Positions 5,292 to 51,558 of a stretch of 64,000 bases of DNA are shown piece after piece (within the stretch, counting starts at the first letter, position 1; each line of letters begins with the position of its first letter). The notes under the pieces are model-generated. The model was given only the letters and a program-made list of their open reading frames with translations, searched no databases and was not told the DNA's origin. The position numbers and the translations under genes are program-made. This stretch comes from Chara braunii (Eukaryota > Plantae > Charophyceae), in assembly GCA_003427395.1 (NCBI GenBank), contig BFEA01000012.1, positions 5,973,336 to 6,037,335 on the forward strand. Reading direction: 5' to 3'.

Positions 5292-7292
5292 GTTTTTCAA
5301 ATATCGGATTTAGTTATGTTATCTTAATAATCATTCCATCTGTTTTTGGCTATTGAATCTGAATGAAAGCATCTCCTTTAGGGTTGAAGCCCCTCCCTGC
5401 GAGGGTTACACAGGGGGGGGGGGGGAGATCTTTGAGAGGGAGGGGCGGTGTTGAGGGTTTGTCCTTTTTTGGGCCACGCTGACTTTTGGGTCGGATCAGC
5501 TATGGCGGTTGGGGAAAGAGGACAAGGGGTGTTGATGTCAGCATGGTGAGACGTTGTAGGGTTGTTTCACTTGGAGGAGGTAGGGCAGGAGGGAACTGGG
5601 ATCTTCGGCTCTGCGAGGCATACTTTAGGGGGTACTGTATGCAGCTGAGGGAGCAGGAGTGACATTTAGGGGGCTGTTCTGAACTGGGGTTGGGAGGTGA
5701 GGGGGTGCTTCCCCGCGGAGGCAGTATCAGACAGGGGGTCGTTTTTTTAGGGAGAGGAGTAATCCGTTTTGGTTGTTGTGTCCTTGCACATGGAATCGAT
5801 ATTAGAATAGGCGTTGGAGTTTCCATGGGGAGAGAGGGTGGTTTTTTTCCTCCCTTCCCCTCTTCTGATGGAAATAGTAGGCGTTGAAACGTTATAGGGT
5901 TTTCTCAATCTTCCGATTTCCTGATTTTTTAATATGTTCTTGAGAGAGGTGAGTGAGAGAAGTAGATGGTGGGATATCAGGCGTCCTACTAGCGAGGGGG
6001 CAAGCTCGTAGGACGAAAATAGAGCACATCAGCAGTGAAGATGATGATTCTGCTGCAGTAAGTCTTGCCGGAGTGAGGTAAAGAGGATTGTTGGGGGAGT
6101 TCTAAGTTGTTTGTTCTTAGCTGAAGTCAAGTAATGTCCCTGGTATCTCAAAAAATGAGGAAAGGGGGGAGAGCTAGAACTGGAGGATAGAAGGTAGTAA
6201 GGGGGCTCTCAACAGAGGAAGGTTGTTTGTTAAGGTAAGTAGGTTAGACGGACGATGCTAGGACGACACATGCTGGTGCTGGAGCTTTTGGTCTGTGACC
6301 TAGGGGGAGCTTAAGGCCTGTGGAGTTATGCCAAGGGTGGAAGGCATAACGAAACCGTTCGACGTAGCCGGCGTCGGGGTACTAACCCTGTAACCTGTAT
6401 CAGGGGCTTGCCGCTAAGGGAAATGTTGAGGGAGGAAGGCACTTCCTGTCCGTCAGAACTAGGTTGGTCACTACTGGGGAAGGTTGTGGTGCCCTGTTAC
6501 CCTAGCGGTGTGACGAACAACTTCCTGTAACGCGCAATTTTCTGCGCGGTTGCAATAAGGGGTCCTAAGCTGGGAAGATTGGGCTAATTACGGGAGATCA
6601 GGATCGGTGGAAAATTGCATCAGTGTCCTCGCTTTTTCGTCCTCTTTCGTCGTTTCTTTTTCGAATGATCGGGCACGGGGTCAGGTGTGTCTTGGGGCGG
6701 CCGGTTGAGTGATTGGTCGGATGGTTGTCTGGCGCGCCGCCACGCGCCTGCGCAATTAATAAATGTTGACGTCTTTTTTTTCGGTTAGGTTTCGATCTTT
6801 TTGCGCGCGGACATCGCACGGGAAATTGCTTCGTTCTTTTTGAATTTCCTTTTAAATCTTTTTCGAATTCTGTCGAGCCCCCGATGGCTCTCGGAATTTC
6901 GGACTTTCCTTCTGGAACTCGTGCTTCTTTTTGCTTTTTCGTAGTAGATAGGAATTTAGGAATTTAGTAATTAGGATTTTTCTTGCCGCGCGGCGCCTTT
7001 TGTTTACGCGCTTCTTCATGCGGCTGTAACGACACTCTGATTAGTGGGCGCCCTTAATCGTATGTGTAATTGTAATTTTGGGCGAGCACCATTGTAACTG
7101 TATCTCTCTTCTTGCACTTCGTCTCTCCTCCCCTCCATCTCTTTCTTTTGCTGAAATTTTGTAAGACGCGGCTTGCATGCTCGAGGGTTACGTCCCCCAC
7201 GCCGCGGCCGATCATGCAGAACGCAGGTGTTCCCTCTCTAATCCTCACTCTAAGTCCTGGTAATTCCGTGTTTTTTGCGCATGCATGCACGC

Positions 7293-7298
7293 TATAAA
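7293..7298 (+). promoter_or_regulatory. Candidate LTR TATA box
   Basis: GCTATAAATC is conserved in both LTRs (also ~18265), upstream of a GA microsatellite. Function is inferred. Confidence 0.45.
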
Positions 7299-7554
7299 TC
7301 TTGGCTGCGCGATTAGTCAACTCTCTTAACCCGTTGTCGGAAGCTCGGGGTTGCGCGATCAGGAAGGGTCGGCACACGAGCGAAGTAAGAGGTGAGTAGA
7401 GCAGGAGTTGGGTGACCCGACGGGCTGGTGCCGAACGGGCGGGATTGACGTGGGCCACGACGGACTGTGGGCACGACGAATCCGACCGGTGCGGGAGGGC
7501 TAAGAGGGGTGACAACTTCGTGGGTTGGTGCGTAACGAGGGACTGTCCGCATCG

Positions 7555-7593
<39 letters not shown>

Positions 7594-8446
7594 NNNNNNN
7601 NNNNNNNNNNNNNNNNNNNNNNNNNNNNNNNNNNNNNNNNNNNNNNNNNNNNNNNNNNNNNNNNNNNNNNNNNNNNNNNNNNNNNNNNNNNNNNNNNNNN
7701 NNNNNNNNNNNNNNNNNNNNNNNNNNNNNNNNNNNNNNNNNNNNNNNNNNNNNNNNNNNNNNNNNNNNNNNNNNNNNNNNNNNNNNNNNNNNNNNNNNNN
7801 NNNNNNNNNNNNNNNNNNNNNNNNNNNNNNNNNNNNNNNNNNNNNNNNTGTTTTCTTGTCTCTTCCCCCTCTTCATCTGTGTACATACATTTTGATTGCG
7901 TCTCCGGGCGGTTTGCCCGTTCTTATTTTCGTTTCGGCTTTCTGAAATGTGGGCTTGGGTTTTTGCTCACGTTTGTCCTTGCGATGTCCGTCCTGCTTGC
8001 ATTATGTGTATGATTGCCGAATGTATGGATGTTATGACTGCTTGTCTATCTTTTTGCTGAGAATCCCTATCCTTGCGTTATGTCTATGTCGAATTTTTTG
8101 CCTACACCTGATGTCGCTGTAGATGGGATAGGAATCTGACCTCGATAGTGGGTCTGTTCTCGTTTTTGCTTATCCCGGGATGGGGGTTGTGATATGATTG
8201 CAACTTGCATAATCGACGATTCGAAGTCTGGCCCCGCGAACGCCGCGCAAGAACACATGTAAACGCGATCCGAGTCGCGCCCTTACACGCATTCCCGTGC
8301 GTCGATTCGATCACCCAAAAAAGGATTCGCGGCGGAACCATCATCCCATACGAGCACGTTGAGGCGCCACTAAGTCTGCCTGCCCTACACGTGCTCGTGC
8401 GCGGTGACGATAGGCCGACCCGCGCTATCCCACCGACGATGATACC

Positions 8447-8938
8447 ATGACGTGATCTTGGGGCTCAGACTCATCCTATGACCCAGACTATTTCACCCCT
8501 ATAATAAACGAGTTCATAAGGACACGATACCCCTGTCACACGGAGAATCGGCTATGTCCGCGGGAATTCCACTGTGCCACCTCTAGCGACCCTCGGTGCT
8601 CCGATTTCTCTTCTCCCGACCACACCTACTACTTCACCCACCCGGGATTCGTTGAGATCACCACCAGTTTCCCTCCTTTCTGCCTCCTTCTCCCGTATCA
8701 TCAACTCAGTGTCGTTCCGTGGCCGGCCATAGCCCCCTATTGGCCCAATACGTTTTGCGTGAACTGTCGACGCAGCGGCGCACAGAGCACTCCGAAATTC
8801 CGAAGGCCCAACTCAGGTATGCGGCGGCCTGCGCCACGCGGCAGCCTCCGACGGCCTAACTTTTCAGGACCATCTCCACCACGGAGGAATTTTCTCGTAA
8901 CCCGTCGCCCACAGTGTCCCGGTCCCTTCGGACTATGA
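8447..8938 (+). pseudogene. LTR-encoded Cys/His-rich ORF (~163 aa consensus), unknown function
   Basis: ATG at 8447, a single TGA at codon 3, then open to TGA 8936-8938. The 3' LTR copy (ORF 19180-19518) has CGA at that codon but different lesions. Confidence 0.5.
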
Positions 8939-9086
8939 GACCCTTGCGCGTGCACCCCTCGTTCGCCTAATTGCATTCATACCCTTAAGACTCCCCCCAC
9001 TTCCCCCAAAAATCCTTGGCACACCCCTTTTCGGACTGTCAGGCCCACACTCCACTCCGATCAGGAAGTCGCGCTGGGCGTGAGGT

Positions 9087-9099
9087 TGGTATCGGAGCC
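9087..9099 (+). promoter_or_regulatory. Primer-binding site (tRNA-iMet type)
   Basis: TGGTATCGGAGCC versus the canonical plant PBS TGGTATCAGAGC, immediately after the 5' LTR. Confidence 0.9.
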
Positions 9100-9240
9100 C
9101 GACACGTGGCTAGGGTCTTAGGATCGATAGCACGCTAATTAGGTGACCTGGCTAACCGTGGGCGACCTCGCCCCCGGAACGCGCATAGACGCGACCCTAT
9201 TGTTACCCGAAGCAGATCGGCTAACCGACGAGCAGCCAAC

Positions 9241-10893
9241 ATGGCTGCCAATGTGCAGAACCCGGTTCAACAACAAAATGCTAACCCAAATCAACCCGCC
9301 CCACGTGCACGAGCTCCCATGACGCCACCTGATCTCTATTTGTTTGATCCCGCACACCATCTCGCAGGAGCATGGCTGGCCACACTTAGAGCCCAATAGT
9401 ACACTGACAACGAAGCACAGATCAACATTCCGGTTCGAATGGGAGGAGACACTCATCATTGGTTTAGTACCTATGTATGGGTGGATCTCCCGACCTTCGA
9501 GCGGGACTTTATGAACCGATTTGATTATGTCCACCCTGAGCAGGCGCTGTACATGATCAAGGACCGAGTGCAGAAACCGCTCGAATCCGTCGCGGAATAT
9601 CGAAATCGGTTCTACAGAATGTTCGTAAAAACTGAGCGAGGGGAGCAAGTAGGGAGAGATCTGTTCATCGACGGGCTCCGCAACCGAACAATCAGGGTTA
9701 AGTTGCGAAAGCAATTTTCCCCCATCACTCATACGCTGCAACAAATTATGGCTGCTGCGGAAGAAATGGAATGGAAGTTCGCGGTGAACTTCCTGGAGGG
9801 AGAAGACTAGCCTAGAGACGGAGATTCGACCGAGCTCGCCCGAGCAAGAGCAGAGCTGGCCGCTTTACAGAACAAATTTGAAAACATGGGGTTTGTATCA
9901 GGACCTGTCACCTATATGGAACAGATAGGCCCCAAACGAGTAATCCTAAGTGAGACTCCGAGCATCTCTGCTCCTATGATGCCCCCGCCCGTCGGGGCAT
10001 TACCCCCACCGCCGGTTGAGGCTCCTGTACGATCAAACGAATCAGCGGCCATTTTCGAACTAACCAAAACCTTGATTAGCTTGATCCAGGAAAGCAAAAA
10101 GGAGCAGCGAGAGCACAATGCTCGGCAGGAAGCCATGATGAGGAACATGCGGCCCATTGCGGTACGCGCCCCTCCAATGCAGCAAGGATTAGCCTCGACA
10201 CCTGCGCTTGGAGGAGTCGCAAACAATCTGAATGTTTGTTATGCTTGTCATCAGCCCGGACATCTAGCCCGTGATTGCCCCCACCGACCCCCACAACAGC
10301 GGATCGGAGCCGCACCTATGGCTGTTGCTCCCATCGCCAACAGACCAGGACGAGTCGGAGCCCTGATGGAAGAAATAGAGGGTGGGGGAAGTGCCCTGGC
10401 TACCTCGGAAGAGGCCGCCGAGCTAATCCCGCTAGACCAATACGTATCGCTAGGGTATCCTGGGCTTGGAATGATCGGAACAATCCGACCAGCACCAGAA
10501 CTGAAAGAGGTGGCGGAGTGGCGACCGTCCCTAGGAGAAATGGAGTCGGGAGGACCCACCTTCGTCACAGGGGAGATCGATGTATTAAACATCATCCGAG
10601 CTTTGGACCATCGGATTCCCCTTCCGATTAGTCATTTGCTCTCGATCTCCGAACAGGCCAACGAGCGAATGTTACAGCATTGCAAAGCGAACCGAAAGCG
10701 ATTCACCCTTGCCCGGACCCCGAACGCGAAAGCCAAAAGCCCCGCGCCCGAAGAAAACCCCACAAGTACTTCAGATCCGATACGGTTAGGTTTAATCCAG
10801 AAAGATGATCATTTCGTGCGGATTAAACCAATTCCGTGGAAATCCGCCGAGTGTGATATAGAAATTTGGGGAATCCTTACAATGCTATTATAG
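9241..10893 (+). pseudogene. gag: Gag (capsid-like region plus CCHC zinc knuckle), two in-frame stops
   Basis: ATG 9241 is in frame with ORFs 9439-9810 and 9886-10893; knuckle CYACHQPGHLARDC; TAG stops at 9397 and 9808. Confidence 0.9.
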
Positions 10894-13800
10894 ATTCGGG
10901 AGCGGTTGTGTTGGCTATCTCACTGACAGTGGTCGAAAGGGCAGGCAGGAAAAACGACTTGATCACGCTTTCTGAGAACGATCAGCTGACGAAGAAAGAA
11001 TTAAAACCGTGGGAAGAATGACCAATGTCGCTTTCCGATTAGGTAAAGTGCATGCGCTTGGGGATGTCGTAGTACTAGATGTCAATACGTACGACGTTCT
11101 CCTTGGACTTCCCGCTCTTGTAGCGCTACGAGCAAACCTGGACTTCGAACGATGATCGATCGTCCTCCGAAATACCGGAGGAAAACCCTACGCGGTGCCC
11201 ATGCGATTGACCCTTCGCACTACTATTAACACGGTTCTGCGAGTTTCGCCGATGATGGCAGGGACTCTCTGCATGATCTCTTGGGAGAAATCCGCAGGAG
11301 GAGAGTCATCAACAGACGATGTGGAAAGCAGTGACGAGAATGATCCGGATATCTTGAAATTAGCACGACAACGTGTTTGTTACCCACCACCCAAAACGAT
11401 AGCAAGAACGATGCAACTAACCAGCCGAAAAATTCAAAGGACCAAGGCGATGATCTCGGGTGAGCCCCTCGTGCAGATTTTGAGGATGGTCGATTCTTTG
11501 GAACCCCCGCAAACTCTGTATGAAGGAATCACCCCTCTCCTCGCCCGGTACAACGACAAGAAGCATTACTGTGACATTACGGATCTACCCAAGTCCTTAC
11601 TAACTTCGGCTAAAGAAGTGAGATTGTTACACTTGGGGGCGGAAGCAAGCTCTCTGGAACCCCTTGGGCATTTTGAAGCAGAAACAGACGGACTGGGGAT
11701 AAAGATCGCAACTAAGGAAGTGTCATGGCAGGATGTTTGTGACGGGATTACCCCGGAAGGACACGTGGCAATCCGAGAAGAAGATGCTCAGATGATGGCC
11801 ACGGTGTTCTCCTGGCGATCAGATCATTCATTCATCTCGGCGCCTCCATCCGACTTGTCAAAACAGGCGAACACGAAACAAATTGACGTTCGGATCTGGG
11901 ACCAACTTTTTGAATTGCACGTTCCACAATATGTGCCGGATGAAATCCACCGGGTAATTGCGGATATTCTAACGGAATACCGAGGAGCGATTAGTGTGTC
12001 AGACACTGACATTGGGTTGTCATTAGTAATCCAACATGAAATTCAGACAGAAAATCGCACCCCGATTCATTGCAAACCTTATCGCTATTCCTTGATTGAA
12101 CGCAAAAAGGCTCTCGAACGAATTCGGGAGTTCGAAGCCAGCGGCTGGATTGAACCCGCTACCGGACCTTGGTCCTTTCCTGTAGTGTTAGTACCGAAGA
12201 AGAACGGGGCGATACACATTTGCATTGATTATCGCAAGCTGAACGAAATCACGATCAAAGATGTGTATCCCCTCCCCCGGATTGATGATCTGTTGGATGC
12301 GATTGGATGGGCTAATTATTTCAGCAAGTTTGATATTCGGCATGGCTTCCATCATATTCTAGTAAGGGAAGAAGATCGGCCGAAAACGGCCTTTGTGTTG
12401 TTTGAGGGTACGTGGCAGTGGGTTCGGTGTCCGATGGGGATTTGCAATGCCTCTGCTGCGTTTCAACGAGCGATGAACATGACGTTCCAGAACTTCGTCA
12501 ACAAGACACTGCTGACGCAAGGAATGATTAACTTCTGCGTGATCGTGTACATGGACGACATCCTGGTCTATTCGGAAACCTATCACGGACACACGCAACA
12601 CATCAAATAGACATTGAGTGCATTGAGAGATGCTGGGTTCAAGATTGCGCTTAAGAAGAGCGAATTTTTCCTTTCGGAAATTTCGTTATTGGGCTATATC
12701 GTGACACGTGGAGGATTGCGGCCAGATTCCATAAAAGTTGCGGCGGTGAAGGAAGCTCCGATTCCTACGCCACTGACGCAGGTTCGAGCCTTCTTGGGAC
12801 TAGCGTCGTACTATCGGCGCTTCATCAAGGGCTTCGCCGCGATTGCACGACCACTAACGAATCTGCTACGGAAGGACCAGCCTCTCAGTTGGGACGCGGA
12901 GTGCCAGCATGCCTTTGCAACCCTCAAGGACGCTCTGGCGACGGCCCCTATTTTGATTCGATCGGACCCCTCGAAGCAGTTCATTCTCATCACGGACAGG
13001 CAACCGGAAGCTATTTCCGCTATTCTAGCACAGAGGGGGAACGATGGTCGCGAACACATCATCGAGTATGCATCACGAGCCGTACCGGACGAACGAAGAA
13101 ACAACTCCGCACCTCAGGGTGAGTGTTATGTGGTAGTTTGGGGAATCCAACACGTCCATCCGTACCTTTACGGACAGAAGTTTCGCCTTGTAACGGATCA
13201 CGAGCCTCTGCTGGCGCTGAAGGAACTCACCAATTACACGGGCATGATTGGTCGCTGGGCGGTGCGACTACAAGAATACGACTTCAATATCGTCCATTGA
13301 AAGACAGAGCGACACGGCAACGCGGACGGGCTGACACGTCTGCATCGACCTGCCAAGGTACCAAAAGGCGAGGAAATTACCCCGTGGAAGGAGTCGGGCC
13401 TGACTAACGAACCGAAGTACGGACAAGTGGCAGTTCTCCCACGTGGCAAGAAGCAAAACGGTGGCGATGGGTGATGGAGGTAACCCCACTACCCCTCTTT
13501 CTCCCCATTCCTCCTCATCTCTCCCCTCCCTGCCTGACAAATTTTGCTATTTTTGCGAAGCCATCTCCCGCGTCTATTCGGTCTCCATGCGTCCTAACGG
13601 TGCGGGATATGCGAATTGGATAGATTGCCGACAGTGTGTTGCACGGGCCCACGGCTCGTGCATCCAATACCGGAACGATAGTAAACCATGGTTGTGCCCC
13701 TTGTGCCGGACCGACAAAATTCCGACCGAGACTCGCTTTTTGGATGCCACGTAAGAAGGATTGGAAAAAAACCGAAAGTTTAGAAGGGCCGAAGTATGGA

Positions 13801-15193
13801 CGGATATTGCCTTAATTGCCACCCTAGTAGGACGCCCTCTAAGATTTCACCAAGGAAGATCGAAGGAGGGCCAACGAAAGGGCTCGTGACTATCGATGGG
13901 TAGAAGGTAGATTAGAAAAACAGAAAACGAACGGTAGTGGGATTTGGATGTTAGTGCCACATCCGTTCATGCGGTATGGCTGGGTTAAGACAGCCCACGA
14001 AAAAATTGCGGCTCATTTGGCTGTACGAATCACGGAGTCCGCTATCGACAAAAATGAGTGGTATTGGTCCAATATTCGCGACGATGTGAAGTACATCGTT
14101 GCCACCTGTCAAGTCTGCGCCGTTGATAAAGCGCCGATTCAGCCACCAAGGTCGATAGTGCCCACGGTTGTTGAACGGCCATTTCAGAGAGTAAGCATGG
14201 ACACTACCGACATAGCGGTGCCCCTTGGCCCTAATAGTTGCGAGTATTCAGTCCTACTGGTATTTGTCGACCATTTCTCGAAATGGATCGAAGCGTATCT
14301 TTGTCGCACGCGGCAAGCCACAAAAATCGCGCGATACGTCAACCGTTTCCTCAGAATGCATCAGGACACCAAAGAGATCCTGATCGACAACGGGGCTGAA
14401 TTTAGGGGAGAACTGTTAAGGAATCTGGTCCTACATGGCGTCGCCATACGAAACACTGCACCCCACATGTCGCAATCTAATGGGCTGGTCGAAAACGCTA
14501 ACCGGGTGATAAAAACAGCATTGCGACGAAACATCGCGGCACGAGATCCGAGACCCTGGCCCGATATCGTCGATCACATCCTAGCGGTCCATCGCGGAAC
14601 GCCCCACGAATCGACGGGGTTGAGCCCCTTCCAATTAAGGACCAATAGTGTCGCTTGCGTTTCGATACCAAGCCTCCCGGATGAGTCTACATTGAACCGA
14701 CGGCCCACCAGGGCCACGGGTCGGGACAAGGCCAAACGGCACCTAGAGTTAATGGAACGGTCGCTGCCCAGGCTTAGCCCGAAAGCGAAAGAAAATGACC
14801 GAACTAGCCCAGGGCCGACAGGTGCGAAGCTACGAGGCCCGAAATGGGAATGCGGGTCCGCGGCCCCAGTACAAATTGGGGGACATAGTGCAAGTGAGGA
14901 AATGTGCTCGCCAGGGTAAGCTAGGGCCACGATTCTTCGGGCGATACCGCGTGATTGAGCTCGGTCCCAACAGCGTGGACACTGTGCGTCTCGCCCCTGA
15001 AGTCTCGACAGTCGATCGGCGCGCCAGAATCACCCGCCACGTATCCTATCTTTGCCTCCTCCCCTCTGCTCCCTCCCCTTCTCCCTCGATCTCCCATTCC
15101 GAGGAAGCCGAAGACGACGGCTCTGACTCTCCGCCATCTGCCTCTTCCTCTTGCTCCCCATCTGCCTCCCCGTCACCTTCGCCATCACCATGA
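10870..15193 (+). pseudogene. pol: Pol: aspartic protease, RT, RNase H, PHD, integrase with GPY/F-like tail
   Basis: IIDSGA at ~10893; RT motifs CIDYRKLN, YPLPRID, MPMG-like CPMGICN and YMDD; RNase H FLGLASYYRRF...TDHEPL; integrase H...H/CQVC, SMDTTD, IDNGAEF, NGLVE; LGPRFFGRYRV. Several stops and frameshifts. Confidence 0.95.
13545..13706 (+). other. PHD finger (C4HC3) domain within Pol
   Basis: CYFC-x-WIDCRQC-x4-HGSC-x-WLCPLC: all eight zinc ligands and both PHD-typical Trp positions are present. Confidence 0.88.
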
Positions 15194-15669
15194 GTTTTCT
15201 GGAGGAAAGAGCCCTCAGCGCAGCATCACTTGCTCCCCGTGATCGGTTGACGATCCGGCAAGTCCATCATCCCCGCCTCAGTCCAGACCTTCGGAGGCTT
15301 GCTCACTTCTTCTGCACGGAAGGCGTGTATGCAGCGGCGGTATTCAGAATCGAAGGCCGGCCTGACGCGGTGGTACTAACCGAGGCGGTAGCAGTTCATC
15401 ATTGGGCGATGCCAGGTGTCAGTCGCATATCGGTCGTCATCAACTTCAGTGGCGATCTCTCCACACTTCTTCCTTTGCGACATTCGACAGTGAAGGCGTC
15501 GCTGCACGAGTGGGCGAACGATCTGGTCGCCGAGTGGACTCAGCTGCTGGCTCGTCCCGGAGATACAGTCGCAACGACACTAGCGATCGAGTACGACGGC
15601 CTTCGGATGTATCAACGCGAGCCGCCAGCAGACATCCCTATCCTCGTTCCCTTCCCACGTCCCCAATGA
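15190..15669 (+). CDS. Extra ORF A (159 aa), unknown function
   Basis: Intact ORF. Its ATG (15190) overlaps the pol stop TGA (15191-15193). Confidence 0.65.
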   Translation: MSFLEERALSAASLAPRDRLTIRQVHHPRLSPDLRRLAHFFCTEGVYAAAVFRIEGRPDAVVLTEAVAVHHWAMPGVSRISVVINFSGDLSTLLPLRHSTVKASLHEWANDLVAEWTQLLARPGDTVATTLAIEYDGLRMYQREPPADIPILVPFPRPQ

Positions 15670-17465: not shown

Positions 17466-19813
17466 TGTGACGAACCACTTTCTGTAACGCGCGATTTTCT
17501 GCGCGGTTGCAATGAGGGGTCCTAAGCTGGGAAGATTGGGCTAATTACGGGAGATCGGGATCGGTGGAAAATTGCATTAATGTCCTCGTTTTTTCGTCCT
17601 CTTTCGTCGTTTCTTTTTCGAATGACCGGGCACGGGGTCAGGTGTGTCTTGGGGCGGCCGGTTGAGTGATTGGTCAGATGGTTGTCTGGCGCGCCGCCAC
17701 GCGCGTGCGCAATTAATAAATATTGACGTCGTTTCTTTCGGCTCGGTTTCGATCTTTTGGGGCACGGACATCGCGCGGGAAATTGCTTCGTTCTTTTTGA
17801 ATTTCCTTTTAAATCTTTTTCGAATTTTGTCGAGCCCCTGATGACTCTCGGAATTTCGGACTTTCCTTCTGGAACACGTGCTTCTTTTTGCTTTTTCGCA
17901 GTAGATAGGAATTTAGAAATTTAGTAATTAGGATTTTTCTTGCCGCACGGCGCCTTTTGTTTACGCGCTTCTTCATGCGGCTGTAACGGCACTCTGATTA
18001 GTGGGCGCCCTTAATCGTATGTGTAACTGTAATTTTGGGCGGGCGCCATTGTAACTGTATCTCTCTTCTTGCACTTTGTCTCTCCCGCCCTCCCTCTCTT
18101 TCTTTTGCTGAAATTTTGTAAGCCGCGGCTTGCATGCTTGGATCGATGCGTGGAGAAGGGTTACGTCCCCCACGCCGCGGCCGATCATGCAGAACGCAGG
18201 CGTTCCCTCTCTAATCCTCACTCTAAGTCCTGGTAATTCCGTGTTCTTCGCGCATGCATGCACGCTATAAATCTTGGCTGCGCGATTAATCAGCTCTCTT
18301 AACCCATTGTTGGAAGCTCGGGGTTGCGCAATCAGGAAGGGTCGGCACACGAGCGAAGTAAGAGGTGAGTAGAGCAGGAGTTGCGCGACCCGACGGGCTG
18401 GTGCCGAACGCGCGGGATTGACGTGGGCCATGACGGAATGTGGGCACGGGCGAATCCGACAGGTGTGGGAGGGCTAAGCGGGGTGACAACTTCGTGGGTT
18501 GGTGGGTGACGACGGACTGTCCGCATCGGAGAGAGAGAGAGCGAGAGAAGAAGAGAGTTGAGGTCAATGGACGCGGATTTGCTGTTTTCTTGTCTCTTCC
18601 CCCTCTTCATCTGTGTACATACATTTTGATTGCGTCTCCGGGCGGTTTGCCCGTTCTTATTTTCGTTTCGGCTTTCTAAAATCTGGGCTTGGGTTTTTGC
18701 TCACATTTGTCCTTGTGATGTCCGTCCTGCTTGCATTATGTGTATGATTGCCGAATGGATGGATGTTATGACTGCTTGTCTATCTTTTTGCTGAGAATCC
18801 CTGTCCTTGCGTTATGTTTATGTCGAATCCTTTGCCTACACCTGATGTCATTGTAGATGGGATAGGAATCTGGCCCCGATAGTGGGTTTGTTCTCGTTTT
18901 TGCTTATCCCGCGATGGGGGTTGTGATATGATTGCAACTTGCATAATCGACGATCCGAAGTCTGGCCCCGCGAACGCCGCGCGAGAACAGGTGTAAACGC
19001 GATCCGATTCGCGCCCTTACACGCATTCCCGTGCGTCGATTCGATCACCCAAAAAAGGATTCGGGCGGAACCATCATCCCGTACGAGCACGTTGAGGCGC
19101 CAGTAAGTCTGCCTGCCCTACACGTGCTCGTGCGCGGTGACGATAGGCCGACCCGCGCTATCCCACCGACGATGATACAGTGACGCGATCTTGGGGCTCA
19201 GACTCATCCTATGACCCAGACTATTTCACCCCTATAATAAACGAGCTCATAAGGACACGATACCCCTGTCACACGGAGAATTGGCTATGTCCGCGGAAAT
19301 TCCACTGTGCCACCTCTAGCGACCCTCGGTGCTCCGATTTCCCTTCTCCCGACCACACCTACTACTTCACCCACCCCGGATTCGTTGAGATCACCACCAG
19401 TTTCCCTCCTTTCTGCCTCCTTCTCCCGTATCATCAACTCAGTGTCGTTCCGTGGCCGGCCATAGCCCCCTATTGGCCCAATACGTTTTGCGTGAACTGC
19501 CGACGCAGCGGCGCATAGAGCACTCCGGAATTCCGAAGGCCCAACTCAGGTACTCGGCGGCCTCCGACGGCCTAACTTTTCAGGACCATCTCCACCACGG
19601 AGGAATTTTCCCGTAACCCATCGCCCACAATGTCCCGGTCCCTTCGGACTATGAGACCCTTGCGCGCGCACCCCTCGTTCGCCTAATTGCATTCATACCC
19701 TTAAGACTCCCCCCACTTCCCCCAAAAATCCTTGGCACACCCCTTTTCGGACTTTCAGGCCCACACTCCACTCCGATCAGGAAGTCGCGCTGGGCGTGAG
19801 GTTGGGCGTCACA
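17466..19813 (+). repeat. 3' LTR (2348 bp)
   Basis: Starts TGTGACGAAC, ends GGGCGTCACA, followed by the TSD GCGG. Confidence 0.96.
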
Positions 19814-36899: not shown

Positions 36900-39800
36900 C
36901 CGAAAAAAGTGCAACAATGCGCAAACTACGTCAACATGTACTCTGGATGTCTACTTTGTATGTCGACAAACATGGCAGAAAGCGCGAAATTGCCCTCATC
37001 GGCTAGGGCAACTGATGATGAACGCCATGCCAGCAGCTCCACATTGCCCACAAGCTGCAGCCCCCGTGGCGCCACGGTGGAGGAACAAGTAGCTAACGGA
37101 CCTGGGCGAGTATGAGACATGGTGGACGAACAAGTCATAAAGGTGTGTTAATCAATTCCTGTTATCTCCGAGGAAGCTCCTTCTGGACTCGTACCCATCG
37201 ATCAAATTTTCAGCTTGGGATAACCATGAACTAGAGATGATTAGGGCGGCTCAGCCCACTTCGGAGAATCCCATGGGTTTCGAAACCAAGGCTAGCGACC
37301 TTGGAAATGGAAGTGAGAGGTCCCATACACAAGACAAGGGTATTATAGGTTATGGAGATCACCCAAGCTCTAAATCATTGCTTCCCCTTGCCTATCAAGC
37401 ATCCCATCCATCAATCTCCAAGGATGTTCGTCTCAAGGCACTTGATCCTCCTCGACTGGGCCTCTTGCAGGTTCCCTGAGGATGATAACTCGATCTGAAA
37501 GGAGCTCATCGCCAAAATATGATGCGAAAGTTTGGGGACAACCCTACAATGTTGTTATTGACATGGACTCAACCGTCTTGACCAACTCCCTGAAACTAAA
37601 TGAAACAACCGGGCGAACAAAAGACCACCTCTCCGTACCCACCTGGAGAACGTTATCTGACCTCGACTGAAGGTAAGGTCTCAGCAGTCGTTCGAATGTC
37701 CAACGTGGCCGTTCGTGTCAGTAGGGTTCACGCCTTGGGCGAAGTGCTACTTCTGGCCGTAGCTTCATACGATGTCCTCATTGAACTTTTTGCCATAATT
37801 CTCATCAGGGTCCAACTGAACTTTAATATGATAAAAGATCTATCGTTCTCACTAACATGGGAGCAAGCGGTATATCTTGCCTATGACTTTAGCCATGTTT
37901 GATGCTCTGATTCAGCAACAACCTTGTTTCCACCCTGTTCATCAAAGAACCCCCCCAACTTTTCACTGAGCCACCCGTCCTAAAAATAACCATCGAAAGA
38001 GCACATGCTTTGATCGTAGGGGAACCGATTGTCCAAATCACCTAATTGCCCACTTCTTTGGAACCCCCCTTCGATTGCTTTATGAACCCACCATCCCCGT
38101 GCTTCCCCGATTTCTGAATAAGAAGTACTTTTGTGATTTGTCCCAACTTCTCGCAATTTCGCTACTCACCATGGATATGGAGATCCGGATGATCCAAACT
38201 CGACACCAAAGTTTTCTCTTCGAAACCACCGCCGAGGTCACCTGCGCCCTTGCTGGGATAACGATTGCTGGTAAGTAGGTAGATCCAACAAAAGACGATG
38301 ATGTGCGTTAGAAAGATGGCTATTTGCTGATGTGGCACTGAATTTTCCACCTTTTCTTTTTTTTTTGAAAGTCCATGGTGTTGTAGAGGCCAGTCACTGT
38401 GTACACCGTGATCACCTGGAGCAGTAGGCCGTGGGTGTCCTGGAATATGAGACCACCTCCCATCCCATCCTCACGTCAATACTCCTAACGCACCCCCCAT
38501 CCCACTATCCTACCTCAGTGTGACAGCACTCAGGACCATTACCCTACCAATGGGCAGGTAACTTGGACCGAACAGCAGTGATAGGCACCAGAGCTGATAG
38601 CCCTGGTGGAAGTGGAATCGGACGAGCCTTGTCGAACGGGAACTTCGGCAGGCCCAGACAATCTACTACAGGCCCCAAGAGACTCTGGGCCCTAGGTTTC
38701 AGACAGGGTAGCACCCATTGACGCAGTCTTACCGTCCTTCCCCTAGCTTACCCAAGGCCAGGCGGAACTCGGACTGGCCTGAGCGACTTATACCCCTACC
38801 CTTACCCCAGGGTCTAAGCCTTATATATAGCCANTAGACAGTNCTACCCGAATATNAGTAGGAACNCCGGTGGCCCATACCTGTCCCTACCGCAGATACT
38901 AGACCCCACCCAGTGACTAGACCCCCCCAGTCTGATAGTTGTGTAGCTCACACTGTATGTGTATACCCGAAGGCTGTGTATGCTTCGTGTATCTATGTAT
39001 GAAGATGTACAGACAGCACTATGTGTGGAAACTTGTGTATGTAGCCCGTAGGCCATGTATAATTCGCAAGCTATGTATATGCCCGAAGGCTGTGTGTGCT
39101 CTGTGAATCAATGTATCGAGATGTATAGGCAGCATCATGAGTGTATATCGAAGAGAGAACGGGGTAAGCTGGACAAGGACCCCCCAAGATCCGAGCCAAG
39201 CTTGAACCCGTGACCTTGAAACATGTAATCGTACGACTCTACCATGTGAACGGCTAGTGGAAATGGCACAAACGTGTGATATGCCAGACTGGGGAGATCA
39301 ACAGAACACCCAAAGATCAACACCCCCAAGCAACCCATGTGAAACCCAGAACCAACATACAACACCATGAACAACCCTTGGGTGGTGCACAGGCAGTGTC
39401 TGTAATAGTACCATGCGTCAGCCCAAGGGAGTGTGCCCAGCCGTGCGTCAATCTAACGCCCTGCCGGTGTACATGTGCAAGGTTGCAATGGAGTTTTGAA
39501 CCCGCAACCTCGTACCACAATGCGCATTTCCAACAGGTGCTCTAACCACTGAGCCACATCATGCTCGGCTCATCGCCGCTATCTTTCATGGCGATTGGAT
39601 GATTCTTTTATCCCGCCCTCGCTATTGGCCTCAGCCACCGAGCTGAGGGGAATGTCAATGATGATTGAAGAACAAGAGTTTGAACTGCCTGCGCCTGAGT
39701 ATGTGCCTATGGAAATCCATCGGTTGATCGGGGACATTTTGGTTGAGTATAAGGGTGCCATTGGCATGTCCAATACTGATATCGGGCTCACTATGATAAT

Positions 39801-40128
39801 CCAGCACAAGGTCCAAATGGGGGATCATCCACCCATTCACTGCCAGCCTCATTACTACTCCTTTGGTGAAATAAGTTAAAGTGCATTAGGGGATTTGAAG
39901 TGAATGGATGGATCAGACCCGCCATGGGCCGCTGATCATTTCCTGTTTTGCTGCTCCTGAAAAAGAACAGGTCTGTCTGTATATGAATTGATTATCGAAA
40001 GTTGAATAAGATTATGATCCAAGATGTGTATCCCCTACCCTGGATTGGGTGTGGCACATACTTCAGTATCTTCGATATTCGGCACGGGTCCATCATATCT
40101 TGGTGAGAGAGGAAGACCACCCGAGATT
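36900..40128 (+). pseudogene. Old Gypsy gag-end/protease/RT-start relic, related to the 6509-19813 element, interrupted by SINE copy B
   Basis: KVWGQPYNVVIDMDS, RVHALGEVLLL..YDVL, FELPAPEYVPMEIHRLIGDILVEYKGAI and PIHCQP align with 10850-12380. The 5' boundary is approximate. Confidence 0.85.
38352..39560 (-). mobile_element. tRNA-derived SINE, copy B (full length, ~1.2 kb)
   Basis: Minus strand starts GATGTGGCTCAGTGGTTAGAGCA (A-box) ... GGGTTCAAAAC (B-box). The A-tail reads as poly-T at 38352-38366. Host pol sequence resumes at 39561. Confidence 0.85.
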
Positions 40129-40710
40129 CATACTGATGTGCAGCCTTTTAGGATGTGATCAACAGACTTCTCATTCAAGGTCATGATATTGTAGTAAAAT
40201 ACACCCTTGAAAACTGCCATGAGCACCCCGTTCGACAGGGTCATTAGATCGGTACACACTCACACACAATAACAACAGCATAGGTAGAAAGGCTAGAGAA
40301 CCAGTTCCTGTGAAATGGGCTAGCACAGTAGTCTGGATTGCTAGGTAATATCAGCATGTACTCACTGATCTTCATTCCACAGAAACAGGAAACTCACGGG
40401 GTAATTCAGTTGAACCCGCAAGCTGGCAGTGTCAATGGCAAGGATGAATGGTGGAGACCTATGTGGCATTCTGAGTTCCACACGGGCCCCTGCAGGGCCT
40501 GACCAGGTAGGCTAGGGGTTAGGTAGGGGCCCCTACAGGCCCTGTGTTGTTTCACTATAGGTAGTGGCCCTCCAGGCCCTGTGTCGTTTCGGCCTAGGTA
40601 GACCCCGTAGGCCGGCAGGCCAGTAGGTAGGCCCCGGAACCTGTTTTGGCAACCGACCCTGGTTGAGGCCCAGTAGGTGCCCAGGCCGTTTCAGGCCTTT
40701 CAAAATTTAA

Positions 40711-43901: not shown

Positions 43902-44529
43902 CTGCCAACACGAGTCAAATCGCCGCAGATAGAAAGAAACCGAGCCTCAGCATGGCACACCATTTACAGTCTTTTGCAGAAAATGGTTGTTTTTTTTTTT
44001 TTTTTTTTTTTTTTAAACAGGGCCTTGTGGTCCTGACTAGTTCTATTCTGGGGAGCGTCAGTCTGGTTCCTATTCCACCGGCAAGTCAACATATAATACA
44101 TCACAAAGGAAAGACTCACGCTTCCTCTCTTTTGCAGAAAATGTGAGAAAGAAATGGAGGAATTTTTGTGCAGTAGCTAATGCCCTGTGTACCATTCATA
44201 CCACCTGGTTCAGACTCATACACCATGAAACATGCTCTCGAAGTTTGTGATGACAAGTCCATGAGCAGTCCGAACTACTCCCATGCATCGATAACTCTTC
44301 TGGTGCTTTGAGACCCAGCGAATTTGAATGCTTTACTGGGATTTCAGAAAACTCGGAACACGCATGAACACATGCATGCAATGTGAGCTCCAACAATAGC
44401 TTCGCGAAATCAACTTATATTATACAAAGGGGCTCGCACCGATGACCTCTTGGATAGGGTGCAGTGATGTCGATATTTCAGCTAGAAAGACTTGGAGTCT
44501 GGGTACCACCAGATTCAGATAAGACCCAA

Positions 44530-47190
44530 GGATCAGCACAAGACAGCATTTCAGACAAGGTATGGACTGTACGAGTTTGTGGTGATGCCGTTTGGGCTTT
44601 GCAATGCACCCGGGACATTCCAGCCAGCAATGAATTAGTGTTTACTTAACCATATTCTTATCTTTAGCAAGGCTCTGGAGGAGCCTGCACAACACTTAGA
44701 CATTGTTCTGTCAATATAGTGTTTTTTAGTACGTCTCTGGAGGAGCATGCACAACACTTGGACATTATTCTAGGTCTCCTTCAGAAACACATGTATAATA
44801 TCAAGTTATTAACATAGAGAAGAGTAAGTTTAGGCACATTGCAGTGGCAAATCGAGCACCGCTGCCTCCAGACGAACAACTGGTTAAAAGACCGCACATA
44901 TTTGGAGCAGAAGGGTTTAGCCCTACCATGGTGCAAGTCTTGCCTGGCCGCCTTCCCTCACCGAAAGATCCCCGAGACTATAAAACACATTTTTTTGCAA
45001 TGCCCAGGGGTGGCGTTGGTGGGACAGGATTTGGCGGCAGCTGGACACTGGGTCAACATGGCCATGGGATTGGAGAGCGCTCCTGTGTGAGGCATGGTCC
45101 CCCCCACCGACAGCCTGTTTGCAGGTAATATGTTTAAGTTGGGGAGGAGAGCAGTTATTTGGGCCCTCTGGCGGAAACGATGTATACATGTTATTGAAAA
45201 CGTCAAAATAGAGGGGGGGGGAACTATAGAAATGATTAAGCAATAGATTCAGGAAGACCTTACGGCACAGTGGCAGAAAGTGAAATCTCAGTTAGAACTT
45301 GGAAGTTTTCTCTGCAAAACAGGACATAAGTTCCATAACCAATGCCATTAAACAATTCTCAGGGGATTGGCTGGGGAATGAGCAAGGGGGTTGGATAGCT
45401 TATATTCGCTGGGAGGGAGGACACCTCCCGGAATACAGCTACAGCAAGCTTAAGAGGGATTATACCATCTGCTTCTAAGGTCGACTCGACGTGTCCTATG
45501 CGGCCTCCCTCAGAGTTCCCTGATCCCTTTCCGCCCCATTGCCTCCCCATGGTGGACTTAGAGTGGTATGGGGCGGTATAAACATCAGAAGCAGGTCTAC
45601 CCGCTGAGGCAAGCAGAAGGTCTGGCAATCAGACAGCTGCGCAAGGGTGAGAACAGGGATAAAGACTATTGAGGCTTTGAGTGCCACCAGCTGGCAGACG
45701 AGGGGTTCTGTTTGGACAAGGTGGGGTTCGGGTGGGAAGTGCAGACCAGGAGCATGGGAGGCGGGAGCGGGGGGGGGGAGGGGGGACCACTCTATTAAAG
45801 ATCACGGGCAGAACTGGTGCCGGCGGTTCGATGATGTAATACAGGATTGGTTTTGGGTTCATGGTACGACCACCGGGTTGGGTCATCGCATTGCCTGTAC
45901 AGTCAATCCCCGGTAACACGGGCAATCAATGCTGGCAGGTCTACACAGTGAAGTTTAACCTTCGAAGGTCACTTTGGGTGGACTACTTCAATTCTTCTTC
46001 CTCAACTATGTGGTGGAGGAGGTCGACTCGTCGAAGGAAGATGAAGAGTTGAGATCTGCTTTTAAGCATTATGGGATTCGGTGAGGTTGCTTGCCCACTG
46101 TTTTATCTTCCGAACTTGCGGTGGAGGAGGTCGGCTCATTGGAAGATGATGAAGAGTAAACGGGCTGCAGGGAAGTAGAAGGATGGTTTTGTTAATTTTC
46201 GCAGCTTGTTCGGAAAAAAGATGTTTTCTCACGAGTAGCTGGTTTTAACAGGCCGGCAGTTTACTCAGTTCTTCTAAAAATTATTGGTTTGTTCTCAGAT
46301 TCTCTCAGGTGAAGCCGGGTATCGGTCCCGGTATTTCAGTGCTTGTAATATGGGACACTGGGCCCGTTTCCCAGCACGTGCTGCTCCCAAAAAATAAAAA
46401 TAAAAATAAAAATTCTTGTACTTAGATCATGAGATGTCTCAAGATGGGTTGAGACCTGAGGATGGAACGGTAGCGGCCATCCTGGCCGCGGTCTCAGTCA
46501 AATCATTCTTACGGATGACAAGCTACTATAGGCCGTTTGTGAAAAAATACAGCAGTACAGCAGTGCCTTTGACCGATCGGACTTGCCTTGACACCCCGTG
46601 GGACTGGACTAAGCAATGTCAGTGGGCTTTCAAGAAATTCCAGTCCGCCCTGATGCGGCATTCTGATCCCGATAAGCCTTTATCGTTATCACTGACGCCA
46701 GTCAATATGGGATAGGTGCAGTGTTACATCAATTGGAGGGCCATCTCAGAAGCTGGCAATTCGACTTATGACGGAGAGTTGTATGTACTGTACACGACCC
46801 TGAAACATTGGAAGCAATACCTCGATGCCAGACATTTTGAAGTCTCGTCCAACCACGAGACTCTCCAATTGATCAAGACGCAGCCTGTGCTGTCTGAGGC
46901 ACGGAAAAGACAGATGCACGTCATAGATATGTATAACTTCACCGTCAAGCATGTCAAAGGACAGTTCTATGTGGTTGCTGATGGATTGTCCAGAAGCGCT
47001 GACTTTCTCGGTTTGCTTGTCACTAAGTTTGGTTTAGAAGGGCATGCACATCAGCAGATGATCAATTTGTCAAGGGAGAGAGTTTGAAATGAAATCATAA
47101 CACAACTCTCTGTACAGGATAGAAAGATGTTCAAGGAGTTTAGGATGGTGGATGGATTATTGTGGGTCTGGCATGGCTCAAACGCAAAAG
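44530..47190 (+). pseudogene. Degenerate Gypsy RT-RNase H fragment split by a LINE
   Basis: [28 protein letters not shown] at ~44540; resumes after 46413 with YLDHEMSQDGLRP...SFLRMTSYYRPFV, LKHWKQYL and VADGLSR. Confidence 0.85.
44835..46412 (+). mobile_element. 5'-truncated L1-like LINE (zf-RVT remnant, long 3' region, A-rich tail)
   Basis: LQWQIEHRCLQTNNWL...WCKSC...ETIKHIFLQCP; ends in (AAAAAT)n at 46389-46412. Confidence 0.75.
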
Positions 47191-49375: not shown

Positions 49376-51330
49376 GACTGCCTTAACTAACAAAGGGCAG
49401 AACCGAAATTCAATGAAGAACACCACTCGTCTCCCTAAACGAGCAAAGATCCCATCTTCTCCGAAGGATGCTTCAACCAAGTTGTGGGAAGACCTTCGGA
49501 TCAGTCCAAAAGAATGGGAGAAAGATTGAAATTGAAAGTATGCTTGCATTGCCAAAAGAAGGGCCATGTGGTCCAAGACTGTTTCCGTTTGCAGGGAAAC
49601 CAGTCAAAGGCGTAGAGAAGTTGTCAGCACTCTCTAAGGCAAGAGAGGCTGAGCTGGTAAGTGCAAGTTCATCCATAGAGCGTTCCTTATACTGATTCCA
49701 AGGCTGATGCAGTCCAAGTCCTCTATGTTGAGCATTAGACGTCTAGAGAGAGAGAATTTCACTCCCACTTGAAGCACTGGGCTAAGCTTCAACAAAATGG
49801 TGCTCAAGGTGCACTGAAGTTAATCTTCTTTAAGATTCTCATTGGCCATACTTACATATGTGCTTTGATTGATTTTGGGTCAGCTGGAAATTTCTTTCCT
49901 CCTCGTGGTGTTGGTAAGGCGGGCCTGGGAATGAAGCATGTGGAACTGCAGAACCCTTGTAAGACCCAAGTTGGCAACCAGGCGGTTGTCACCTTAACAC
50001 ATGCAGTCAAAGGTGTGCACACTACCTTTGATGCTGATTGTATTGTCACACGCATTGAACACATATGTGCTCGAAGAATGTCCCTTTGAAGCGGTTATTG
50101 GCTTGCGTTGGCTTCAGGTCCAGTGCCTACGAACCGTTTGGAAGGAGCCACTCTACGTGGTACATGATGGTTCGGGGATCGAGCGTTCAATCCTTAATTC
50201 CCAGTGCGTCTTCTAAATGCATTAAGATTCTGCAGGAAATGGTGCAAGCGTGAGAAGGATGACCAGATGTACATAGCCTTTGGTCAAGCCTCCTCATGCA
50301 CCCTCTACTTTTATGACATTTAGTACTTTTAATCATATGACTAATTCTTCTACAACTCCTCCTAAATCTTTTGCATCTATTTGTGCTCTCAGTGCATCTA
50401 ATTCGGAGTCTGTTGTTTTGGCTGCCAATTCACAGCCTGATTTTTCTGCACCTGATTAGGATTCTCCACCTCCAGAAATCTCAACGACTATTTGCAGCCT
50501 TTTAGACAGTTTTCTGGCGTCTTGGCCAATCCAAGTGGAGCTCCCATGCGTCCGATCAAGCACAAAACTGAACCGTTGGAAGGCAGTGTTCTTCCAAAGA
50601 GTTGTGTCCATCGAATGGACCAGCTGAATTGGAGGCACTCCAAAAATAGATTGATGAGATGATTGACAAGGGGTGGTGCACCTATTTTTTTGTTCCCAAG
50701 AAGGGAGGCAAACTCCGGATGTGTATCAACGATCGTGGGTTAAACCGAATCACAAGAAAGAGTGCTTACCCACTGCCACGCATAGATGATCTGTTGGATG
50801 CTCGGATGGGTGCAAGGGCTTCTCCAAGATCGATCTCAAGTCTGGCTACCACGAGAGATTGAAGTCGATTTGGCAGACCAGCACAAAATTGCGTTCACGA
50901 CATGCGATTGGCTATATACGAGTTCATCATTATGCCCTTCGGTCTCATGAACACACCAGTCATTTTTCAAAGCCTCATGGATCGTGTTTTCAAAATGAGA
51001 TCAAACAATTGGTTGTTGTATACCTTGACGATATTCTGATTTTCAATCAATCCATGGATGAGCACATGAAACACCTTGAGGAAGTCCTTGAGATCCTCAA
51101 GGAAGCACACTCGCATGTCAACTTGGAGAAGTATGAGATAGTCCGCCATAGTAGTTTGGGAGAGACAACATCATCTATCTTGGGCATCGGTTGTTTGTCG
51201 TAGGCCTTAAGCCCGAGGCAACCAAGGTTGAGGTCATTTGCAATTGGGCTCAATTGACGAACGTTCCTGCGTTATTTTCTTGGCCTTGCGTCTTATTACC
51301 AAAAGTTTGTCCCAAAATTTTATGTCATTG

Positions 51331-51558
51331 CACACCCATTGTCCAGACTAACAAGTAATAATGTTCCTTACCAATGGAGTGATGCATGTGAGACCGCTTT
51401 TCAAGCCTTAAGGACGCTTTGGTGAGTCACATTGTGCTCCGCATGTACACCCATTGTCCAGACTAACAAGTAATAATGTTCCTTACCAATGGAGTGATGC
51501 ATGCGAGACCGCTTTTCAAGCCTTAAAGATGCTTTGGTGAGTCACATTGTGCTCCACA
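51331..51558. repeat. ~115-bp tandem duplication within the RNase H region
   Basis: ACACCCATTGTCCAGACTAACAAGTAATAATG...GTCACATTGTGCTCC occurs twice. Confidence 0.9.

Follow-up and report, generated by a model that had tools for sequence, protein, structure and literature searches.

How does a zinc finger come to lie between the RNase H and the integrase of a retrotransposon, what kind of finger is it, and in which protein would it be produced? These questions are raised by a stretch of 64,000 nucleotides from the green alga Chara braunii (assembly GCA_003427395.1, contig BFEA01000012.1, positions 5,973,336 to 6,037,335 of the forward strand), the whole of which is referred to below as the window. 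It contains a dead copy, about 13.3 kb long, of a long terminal repeat (LTR) retrotransposon in which the LTRs enclose, in this order, gag with a CCHC zinc knuckle, protease (PR), reverse transcriptase (RT), RNase H (RH) and integrase, the arrangement of the Ty3/Gypsy elements (Metaviridae). The explanation that is favoured here, with reasonable though not high confidence, is that the whole family to which this copy belongs possesses an integrase headed by a PHD finger, that this integrase is encoded by a separate open reading frame (ORF) reached by stop-restart, and, more tentatively, that the finger would tether the integrase to chromatin.

In the window, the finger obeys the pattern C-x2-C-x23-C-x2-C-x4-H-x2-C-x11-C-x2-C, with a tryptophan residue two positions before the seventh ligand. 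It is read in frame 0 and sits between the end of the RNase H, in frame 2, and the H2C2 and core regions of the integrase, in frame 1. The complete C4HC3 motif that an earlier note on this DNA had reported between the RNase H end and the HHCC of the integrase is confirmed. When the 64-kb window was shuffled 300 times with an order-2 Markov model and inspected in all six frames, no such motif arose, and a chance motif is ruled out.

The distribution of the finger was assessed in reads and in natural copies. Among the contigs of four runs from one sample, compared with positions 12600-15200 at a likeness of at least 85%, about 9,000-14,000 short contigs per run matched. The summed depth reached 12-24 thousand over the finger (13470-13730) as compared with 9-30 thousand over the RT and RNase H, that of the integrase being comparable, and variants skipping the finger consisted of single contigs with a depth of 7-18. 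The comparable depth and the rarity of the finger-skipping variants indicate that the finger is common to a very abundant family instead of having been inserted in this copy alone. Twelve loci of the Chara assembly (L001 to L012), reached through gene models, supplied 13 further fingers, bringing the number of copies to 14 with that of the window; together with the read depth, these copies rule out a private insertion. Clade A comprises the window, L007, L008, L010 and L011, plus a sublineage made of L001 and L006 and the single copy L009; clade B comprises L002-L005 and the two copies of L012, and its identity to clade A amounts to about 40% in the finger and about 51% in the integrase. All of the copies are dead, with approximately one frameshift per kb. 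Over 12600-15200, most of the differences that separate the window copy from the rest of the family are transitions (A>G and T>C at 74 places each, G>A at 56 and C>T at 55), each type of transversion being found at only 5-15 places.

Despite this identity of about 40%, the majority state is Cys or His at every ligand position in both clades. Six copies (the window, L002, L007, L009, L010 and L011) retain all eight ligands, with the spacing C-x2-C-x23-C-x2-C-x4(5)-H-x2-C-x10-11-C-x2-C, and the tryptophan preceding the seventh ligand forms part of the sequence PWLCPLC (clade A) or TWVCPNC (clade B). Selection was estimated from pairwise Nei-Gojobori comparisons of natural copies, using the ratio of nonsynonymous to synonymous differences per site (pN/pS), the PHD module being delimited from the ATG to the residues RFLDA. 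This ratio lies between 0.09 and 0.34 for the PHD module (0.09 for the window versus L007, 0.12-0.26 for L002 versus L003, L004 and L005, and 0.34 for L001 versus L006; Fisher p 1e-4 to 2e-10), between 0.14 and 0.23 for the integrase, between 0.11 and 0.26 for the RNase H, and between 0.06 and 0.07 for the RT. The finger is under purifying selection as strong as that of the integrase and the RNase H, which refutes the absence of selection under which the idea of a functional finger was to be abandoned.

With respect to its structure, the finger very probably adopts a PHD-type fold. Both the spacing of the ligands and the W-x-C-x2-C signature are canonical for PHD fingers. A profile built from eight fingers retrieved, at E <=10, five sequences only from the PDB, all of them PHD fingers with their ligands in register: ING1-like, SHPRH, ING2, ASH1L and a PHD family protein. 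In the ESM Atlas, every neighbour that bears a name is a PHD cluster (scores 0.86-0.89), which has the value of a lead only, and the Pfam families matched by the finger are PHD, PHD_2, PHD_4 and FYVE_2, all below threshold. Several results nevertheless weigh against the assignment. The PDB matches are weak (E 0.12-1.2), and the matches to PF00628, the model with which the earlier note had proposed to check the finger, stay at 15.7-16.7 bits for a gathering threshold of 24, those to PHD_4 and PHD_2 being also below their cut-offs. AlphaFold2 models are of low confidence, with a mean predicted local distance difference test score (pLDDT) of 39 for the finger alone (alignment of 8 rows) and of 43, with about 30 in the finger, for residues 1-250 of the L002 ORF (10 rows). 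Moreover, the His ligand is preceded by Ala or Ser instead of the usual aromatic residue, and one or two ligands are missing from several dead copies, although decay would give the same result. In the ORFs of L001 and L002, Pfam returned no PHD match.

As regards its function, a role in histone reading and in the tethering of the integrase is plausible by analogy with chromoviruses. When aligned with ING proteins, the invariant tryptophan located before the third ligand (C3) and the tryptophan located before the seventh (C7) coincide with two residues of ING2, which we take to be a residue of the methyl-lysine pocket and the cage tryptophan, respectively. Such a finger might bind the tail of histone H3 and anchor the integrase complex to chromatin that is in a particular state, and could thereby take over the job performed in chromoviruses by a chromodomain at the C-terminus of the integrase. 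The Chara element lacks the latter: Pfam yielded no chromodomain match at E <=1 in the integrase C-terminus of the window, in the ORFs that follow it, or in the intact 619-residue ORF of L002. The earlier statement that the finger forms the N-terminus of the integrase product, and that no chromodomain follows its GPY/F-like end, is thus borne out.

The main rival to a histone-reading role is that of a nucleic-acid-binding or structural extension at the N-terminus of the integrase. That the finger is no histone reader, but an extension of this type or a RING-like module of protein interaction, is considered unlikely, even though the sub-threshold family scores, the non-aromatic residue before the His ligand and the AlphaFold2 fold devoid of confidence would all agree with it. 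So would the location of the finger directly N-terminal to the HHCC domain, since the N-terminal extension domains of retroviral integrases, e.g., those of spuma- and gammaretroviruses, sit directly before HHCC. However, the C3-x2-C4-x4/5-H spacing and the W-x-C7 motif resemble those of PHD and not of RING-CH fingers, the named neighbours and the PDB matches belong without exception to the PHD fingers, among them ING1-like and ING2, which read H3K4me3, and the tryptophans before C3 and C7 align with the pocket residue and the cage tryptophan of ING2.

The organization of the reading frames tells in which protein the finger would be found. The finger and the N-terminus of the integrase share one frame in nine natural copies (L001-L005, L007, L009, L010 and L011), and uninterrupted ORFs of at least 300 codons start from the ATG in L001-L005, reaching 503 amino acids in L001 and 619 in L002. 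With the RNase H, the finger is in frame in none of the 14 copies, which represent at least three sublineages. Relative to the RNase H, it is displaced by +1 in 11 copies (the window, L007, L008, L010, L011, L002-L005 and both L012 copies) and by -1 in the three others (L001, L006 and L009). All 14 copies have kept an ATG located 78-105 nt upstream of the first Cys codon, and a stop in the RNase H frame occurs within 10 nt of it in 11 of the 14. Depending on the copy, the junction reads ATGGGTGA in the sublineage of the window (13467-13474 there), ATGA (L006), or TGA or TAA followed by 7 nt and the ATG (clade B), so that the stop of the first ORF either overlaps the AUG of the second or is separated from it by a few nucleotides, and this geometry is conserved as in stop-start junctions. 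In four of five pairs, the minimum of pN/pS passes from the RNase H frame upstream of the ATG to the PHD frame downstream of it. The change of frame and the ATG common to all 14 copies, together with the stop close to the ATG in 11, show that the PHD-integrase is an ORF of its own.

These results modify the initial view, in which the finger was embedded in a single Pol polyprotein and its breaks were lesions of decay. The polyprotein is contradicted by the different frames of PR-RT-RH and PHD-integrase and by the stop and the ATG at their junction; of the continuous frame from RNase H to integrase that the view implied, only the part joining the finger to the integrase exists. Decay does explain the breaks located downstream of the finger, i.e., the stop at 13752 and the shift at 13832-13841, but not the upstream change, which is common to all copies. 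A sense codon occurs at the site of the 13752 stop in L001, L007, L010 and L011. At 13831, the consensus of the loose-end contigs is two letters longer over the next ten positions in all four runs, and the corresponding deficit of the window copy accounts for the passage from frame 0 to frame 1, L007, L010 and L011 holding a single frame across this site. A further shift near 14774, where a one-letter difference concerns 19-47% of the depth, accounts for the passage from frame 1 to frame 2.

Judging from the sequences, the separate PHD-integrase ORF is probably reached by stop-restart. The translation of PR-RT-RH would end at the stop that overlaps or abuts the conserved ATG, and termination-reinitiation (stop-start coupling) at this ATG would release the PHD-integrase as a distinct protein, predicted to consist of the initial Met, a Ser/Pro-rich linker of 25-35 residues, the finger, a second linker of some 60 residues, HHCC, the DDE core and the GPY/F-like end. 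Couplings of this AUGA or UAAUG type are exemplified by the coat protein and RNA-dependent RNA polymerase (CP/RdRp) of victoriviruses, VP1/VP2 of caliciviruses and ORF1/ORF2 of SART1, in which the stop and the AUG similarly overlap or lie a few nucleotides apart, and the frame relation is free to vary. To our knowledge, no Ty3/Gypsy element has been reported to make use of such a device between RNase H and integrase. The same coupling would join the ORFs located downstream of the integrase in the Chara family, where the integrase stop overlaps the ATG of the next ORF as ATGA (15190-15193 in the window; also in L002, L003 and L005). Two difficulties have to be set against stop-restart: without special signals, an ORF longer than 2 kb makes for inefficient reinitiation, and an integrase separate from Gag-Pol would have to reach the particle in some other way. 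A more elaborate version, in which the free PHD-integrase forms one link in a chain of coupled ORFs and its cryptic PHD reads the H3K4 state for the choice of insertion sites, is tentative and rather doubtful; if true, it would represent a design of expression and targeting not previously described for Ty3/Gypsy elements.

Stop-start junctions of the ATGA or TAAATG type are found in chains in both clades, at 15190-15193 and 15666-15669 in the window, 15193-15196 and 15717-15722 in L002, 9473-9476 and 9997-10002 in L005, and 10647-10650 in L003. The ORFs that follow the integrase have no Pfam match, and one of them displays a long acidic tract.

A programmed +1 ribosomal frameshift at the stop of the RNase H frame offers another way of expressing the finger, which would then reside inside a Gag-Pol fusion with the PHD-integrase joined to RT-RH. 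The shift could be stimulated by the stop, as in antizyme or prfB, or proceed by out-of-frame decoding as in Ty3, which itself uses +1 frameshifting for GAG3-POL3. Exactly +1 is needed in 11 of the 14 copies, belonging to two divergent clades, and at the would-be shift site a stop comes after a sense codon (GGG-TGA-T, GCC-TGA-G or GCC-TAA-G). A programmed shift would keep one direction in all functional lineages, but L001 and L006, as well as L009, would require -1, and the comparison of L001 with L006 (pN/pS of 0.34 in the PHD module, and 0.21 in both the integrase and the RNase H) reveals purifying selection in the -1 sublineage. These values imply that the sublineage has evolved as a working element with the -1 geometry, which argues against a programmed +1 shift and in favour of a mechanism independent of the frame. 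Besides, a frameshift needs no start codon, yet the ATG beside the stop is kept in every copy, and the later ORFs of the same family are joined by ATGA overlaps. Programmed frameshifting is therefore deemed improbable.

Decay alone, acting on an indel-prone linker in descendants of masters with an intact RH-PHD-integrase frame, would suit dead copies with their frequent frameshifts and a linker of low complexity, but it is very hard to reconcile with the lack of a single in-frame copy among the 14, with a stop/ATG geometry common to the members of each of three sublineages separated by a pS of 0.3 to saturation, with a switch of coding frame exactly at the ATG, and with thousands of contigs in which no indel reaches a share of 10% in 13383-13556, while the shifts at 13832 and 14774 were detected. 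A short intron joining the RNase H to the finger was rejected, the coding sequence abutting both the stop and the ATG with a gap of at most 7 nt. Stop-restart at the conserved ATG is accordingly retained as the preferred reading of the junction.

Searches in protein collections returned only Chara relatives of the finger. When 1.84 billion representative proteins were searched with phmmer, the finger gave two true matches, both of them gene models from the Chara assembly GCA_003427395.1 and derived from transposable elements (TEs); two other matches, consisting of repeat proteins, look spurious, and no host gene could be named as a donor from this search. In word-indexed searches, the whole L002 ORF matched 15 proteins at E <=1e-20, and the N-terminal regions matched four (L002) and three (L001) proteins at E <=1e-3, exclusively from Chara; no finger-bearing relative outside Chara was found with these two ORFs. 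The whole finger occurs in none of the annotated Chara proteins. The TE-derived gene models are chimeric here, and those compared with L012 and other loci (P0010, P0015 and P0017) bridge the break between RNase H and PHD by a predicted intron that removes the finger.

The features of the window element are collected in the following table.

Table 1. Coordinates of the features recognized in the Ty3/Gypsy element of the window.
Feature	Position	Strand	Evidence or remark
5' LTR	6509..9089	+	blastn versus 3' LTR; assembly gap inside at 7594-7848
gag: Retrotrans_gag and CCHC zinc knuckle	9439..10893	+	Pfam PF03732 E 1.9e-4; PF00098 E 3.7e-6
Reverse transcriptase ORF piece, frame 2	11195..12610	+	Pfam RVT_1 E 2.9e-23
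RNase H and C-terminal tail of the PR-RT-RH ORF, frame 2	12614..13474	+	Pfam RT_RNaseH E 2.8e-27
Private in-frame stop in RNase H	13298-13300	+	a different letter in >92% of the depth from other copies
Conserved ATG, start of the PHD-integrase ORF, frame 0	13467..13469	+	overlaps the stop of the RNase H ORF as ATGGGTGA
Conserved stop TGA of the PR-RT-RH ORF	13472-13474	+	homologous to the stops in L007, L008, L010 and L011
Ser/Pro-rich linker, start codon to finger	13470..13544	+	translation; conserved in kind in clades A and B
PHD-type C4HC3 zinc finger (probable fold), 8/8 ligands intact	13545..13706	+	frame 0; motif pattern and pN/pS
Private in-frame stop in the PHD-integrase ORF	13752..13754	+	other copies differ at 13753 (about 98% of their depth)
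Private frameshift, frame 0 to frame 1	13832..13841	+	window copy 2 letters shorter than other copies
Integrase, frame 1: pre-HHCC region, H2C2 (~13984-14133), DDE core (~14173-14466)	13843..14919	+	Pfam Integrase_H2C2 E 4.1e-7 and rve E 2.3e-10, both in frame 1 (13984-14466)
Integrase C-terminal GPY/F-like (SH3-like) part, frame 2	14795..15193	+	weak MLVIN_C and SH3_Tf2-1 matches
3' LTR	17466..19813	+	terminates in GCGTCACA, missing from the 5' LTR

The RNase H finishes with the motif HGNADGLTRL, followed in frame 2 by a tail of about 45 residues. Both LTRs, delimited as direct repeats and by blastn, measure about 2.5 kb and are 93-95% identical to each other. The 5' LTR of the window is devoid of the final 8 bp of the 3' LTR and directly abuts TGGTATCGGAGCC, which resembles a primer-binding site (PBS). 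This difference of 8 bp at the LTR ends is observed in the window (9061-9100 and 19790-19813), L007 (7339/18097), L002 (9088/18864) and L005 (3396/13606). The 3' LTR ends in GCGTCACA in clade A and in a similar ...CGTATCACA in clade B, and the 5' LTRs devoid of the terminal 8 bp adjoin a PBS similar to the initiator methionine tRNA (tRNA-iMet), TGGTATCGGAGC or TGGTATCAGAGC. More distant remnants of Gypsy-type gag, RT and RNase H occur elsewhere in the window (36940-40183, 44420-44635, 46422-46952 and 50689-51836); they share 28-60% identity with the proteins of the main element, and no finger is detectable in them.

The capture of PHD fingers is recurrent among TEs. Such fingers reportedly occur in CR1 long interspersed nuclear elements (LINEs), a finding attributed to Kapitonov and Jurka in 2003. 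They are a common accessory domain of the TEs of Chlamydomonas, where they are present, e.g., in the Penelope-like elements Chlamys (PMC8557442), and have been found in the Ginger1 transposase (PMC2836005) and in the PYGO-like PHD retrotransposons of cnidarians (10.1101/2021.11.30.470311). The Chara family shares this recurrent capture, which extends to Gypsy-integrase-like transposases, but the elements just mentioned belong to other classes and carry their finger at other positions. In addition, their fingers are recognized by Pfam or SMART, whereas that of Chara is sub-threshold and spliced out of the gene models, so that domain surveys would miss it. The co-occurrence of PHD and Chromo domains with RT and integrase domains was surveyed in 172 eukaryotes (bioRxiv 10.1101/2021.11.30.470311), and domain surveys gave Chromo but not PHD fusions for Chara because the gene predictor splices the finger out.

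Among the Gypsy-like elements of green algae, REM1 of Chlamydomonas also has a PHD finger attributed to it (Perez-Alegre et al. 2005, as cited in PMC6673714). According to the passage of PMC2774666 dealing with this element, its int region is truncated and reversed, and retains only a GPY/F module along with a chromodomain; as far as this passage describes REM1, the Chara family differs by a full, forward integrase and by the lack of a chromodomain. In chromoviruses such as MAGGY and Tf1, targeting by the chromodomain has been shown experimentally, as related in two secondary sources (Gao et al. 2008, via PMC6673714 and 10.1101/2021.11.30.470311). The resemblance resides in a Ty3/Gypsy integrase fused to a small reader of histone marks, a quality which the Chara finger would possess only by analogy, and in a mode of action that would consist in tethering the integrase to marked nucleosomes; the chromodomain is C-terminal, whereas the PHD-type finger is N-terminal.

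The closest counterpart is Gypsy-7a_cRei from Chlamydomonas reinhardtii, an element of 15.4 kb in which the domains follow the order GAG-PROT-RT-RH-PHD-INT and pol is succeeded by an additional ORF. Its left LTR is devoid of the last 8 bp present in its right LTR, and a role of the PHD in the choice of insertion sites has been suggested for it (Craig et al. 2022, PMC9940879). The architecture can therefore no longer be regarded as new, as the earlier note had supposed, since the RH-PHD-INT order was published for this element along with the same speculation on targeting; a previously catalogued architecture is among the refuting conditions that the note itself had set. The Chara element is also large, possesses the same domain order and an ORF after pol, and in the window, L007, L002 and L005 the left LTR is similarly short by 8 bp. 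On account of this common LTR quirk, the Chara family may belong to the same deep lineage as Gypsy-7a_cRei. No Chlamydomonas protein matches the Chara finger (phmmer, E <=1e-3). The two elements differ in that PHD and INT are drawn in one Gag-Pol polyprotein in the chlorophyte element, whereas the PHD-integrase of Chara, a streptophyte alga, occupies a separate frame with its own ATG.

What is new here is thus the streptophyte host, the cryptic and divergent finger, and the conserved split of the PHD-integrase into its own ORF. PHD-bearing Gypsy integrases, published for chlorophytes, are now recorded in a streptophyte alga as well, one that is close to land plants and in whose 2-Gb genome the family occupies a large part. 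The conserved division of pol into PR-RT-RH and PHD-integrase ORFs is unusual for Ty3/Gypsy elements, and raises the question of the way by which the integrase enters the particle. Of the two systems, that of Chlamydomonas, with its active Gypsy-7a_cRei, was published first and is the more tractable one with respect to the targeting hypothesis.

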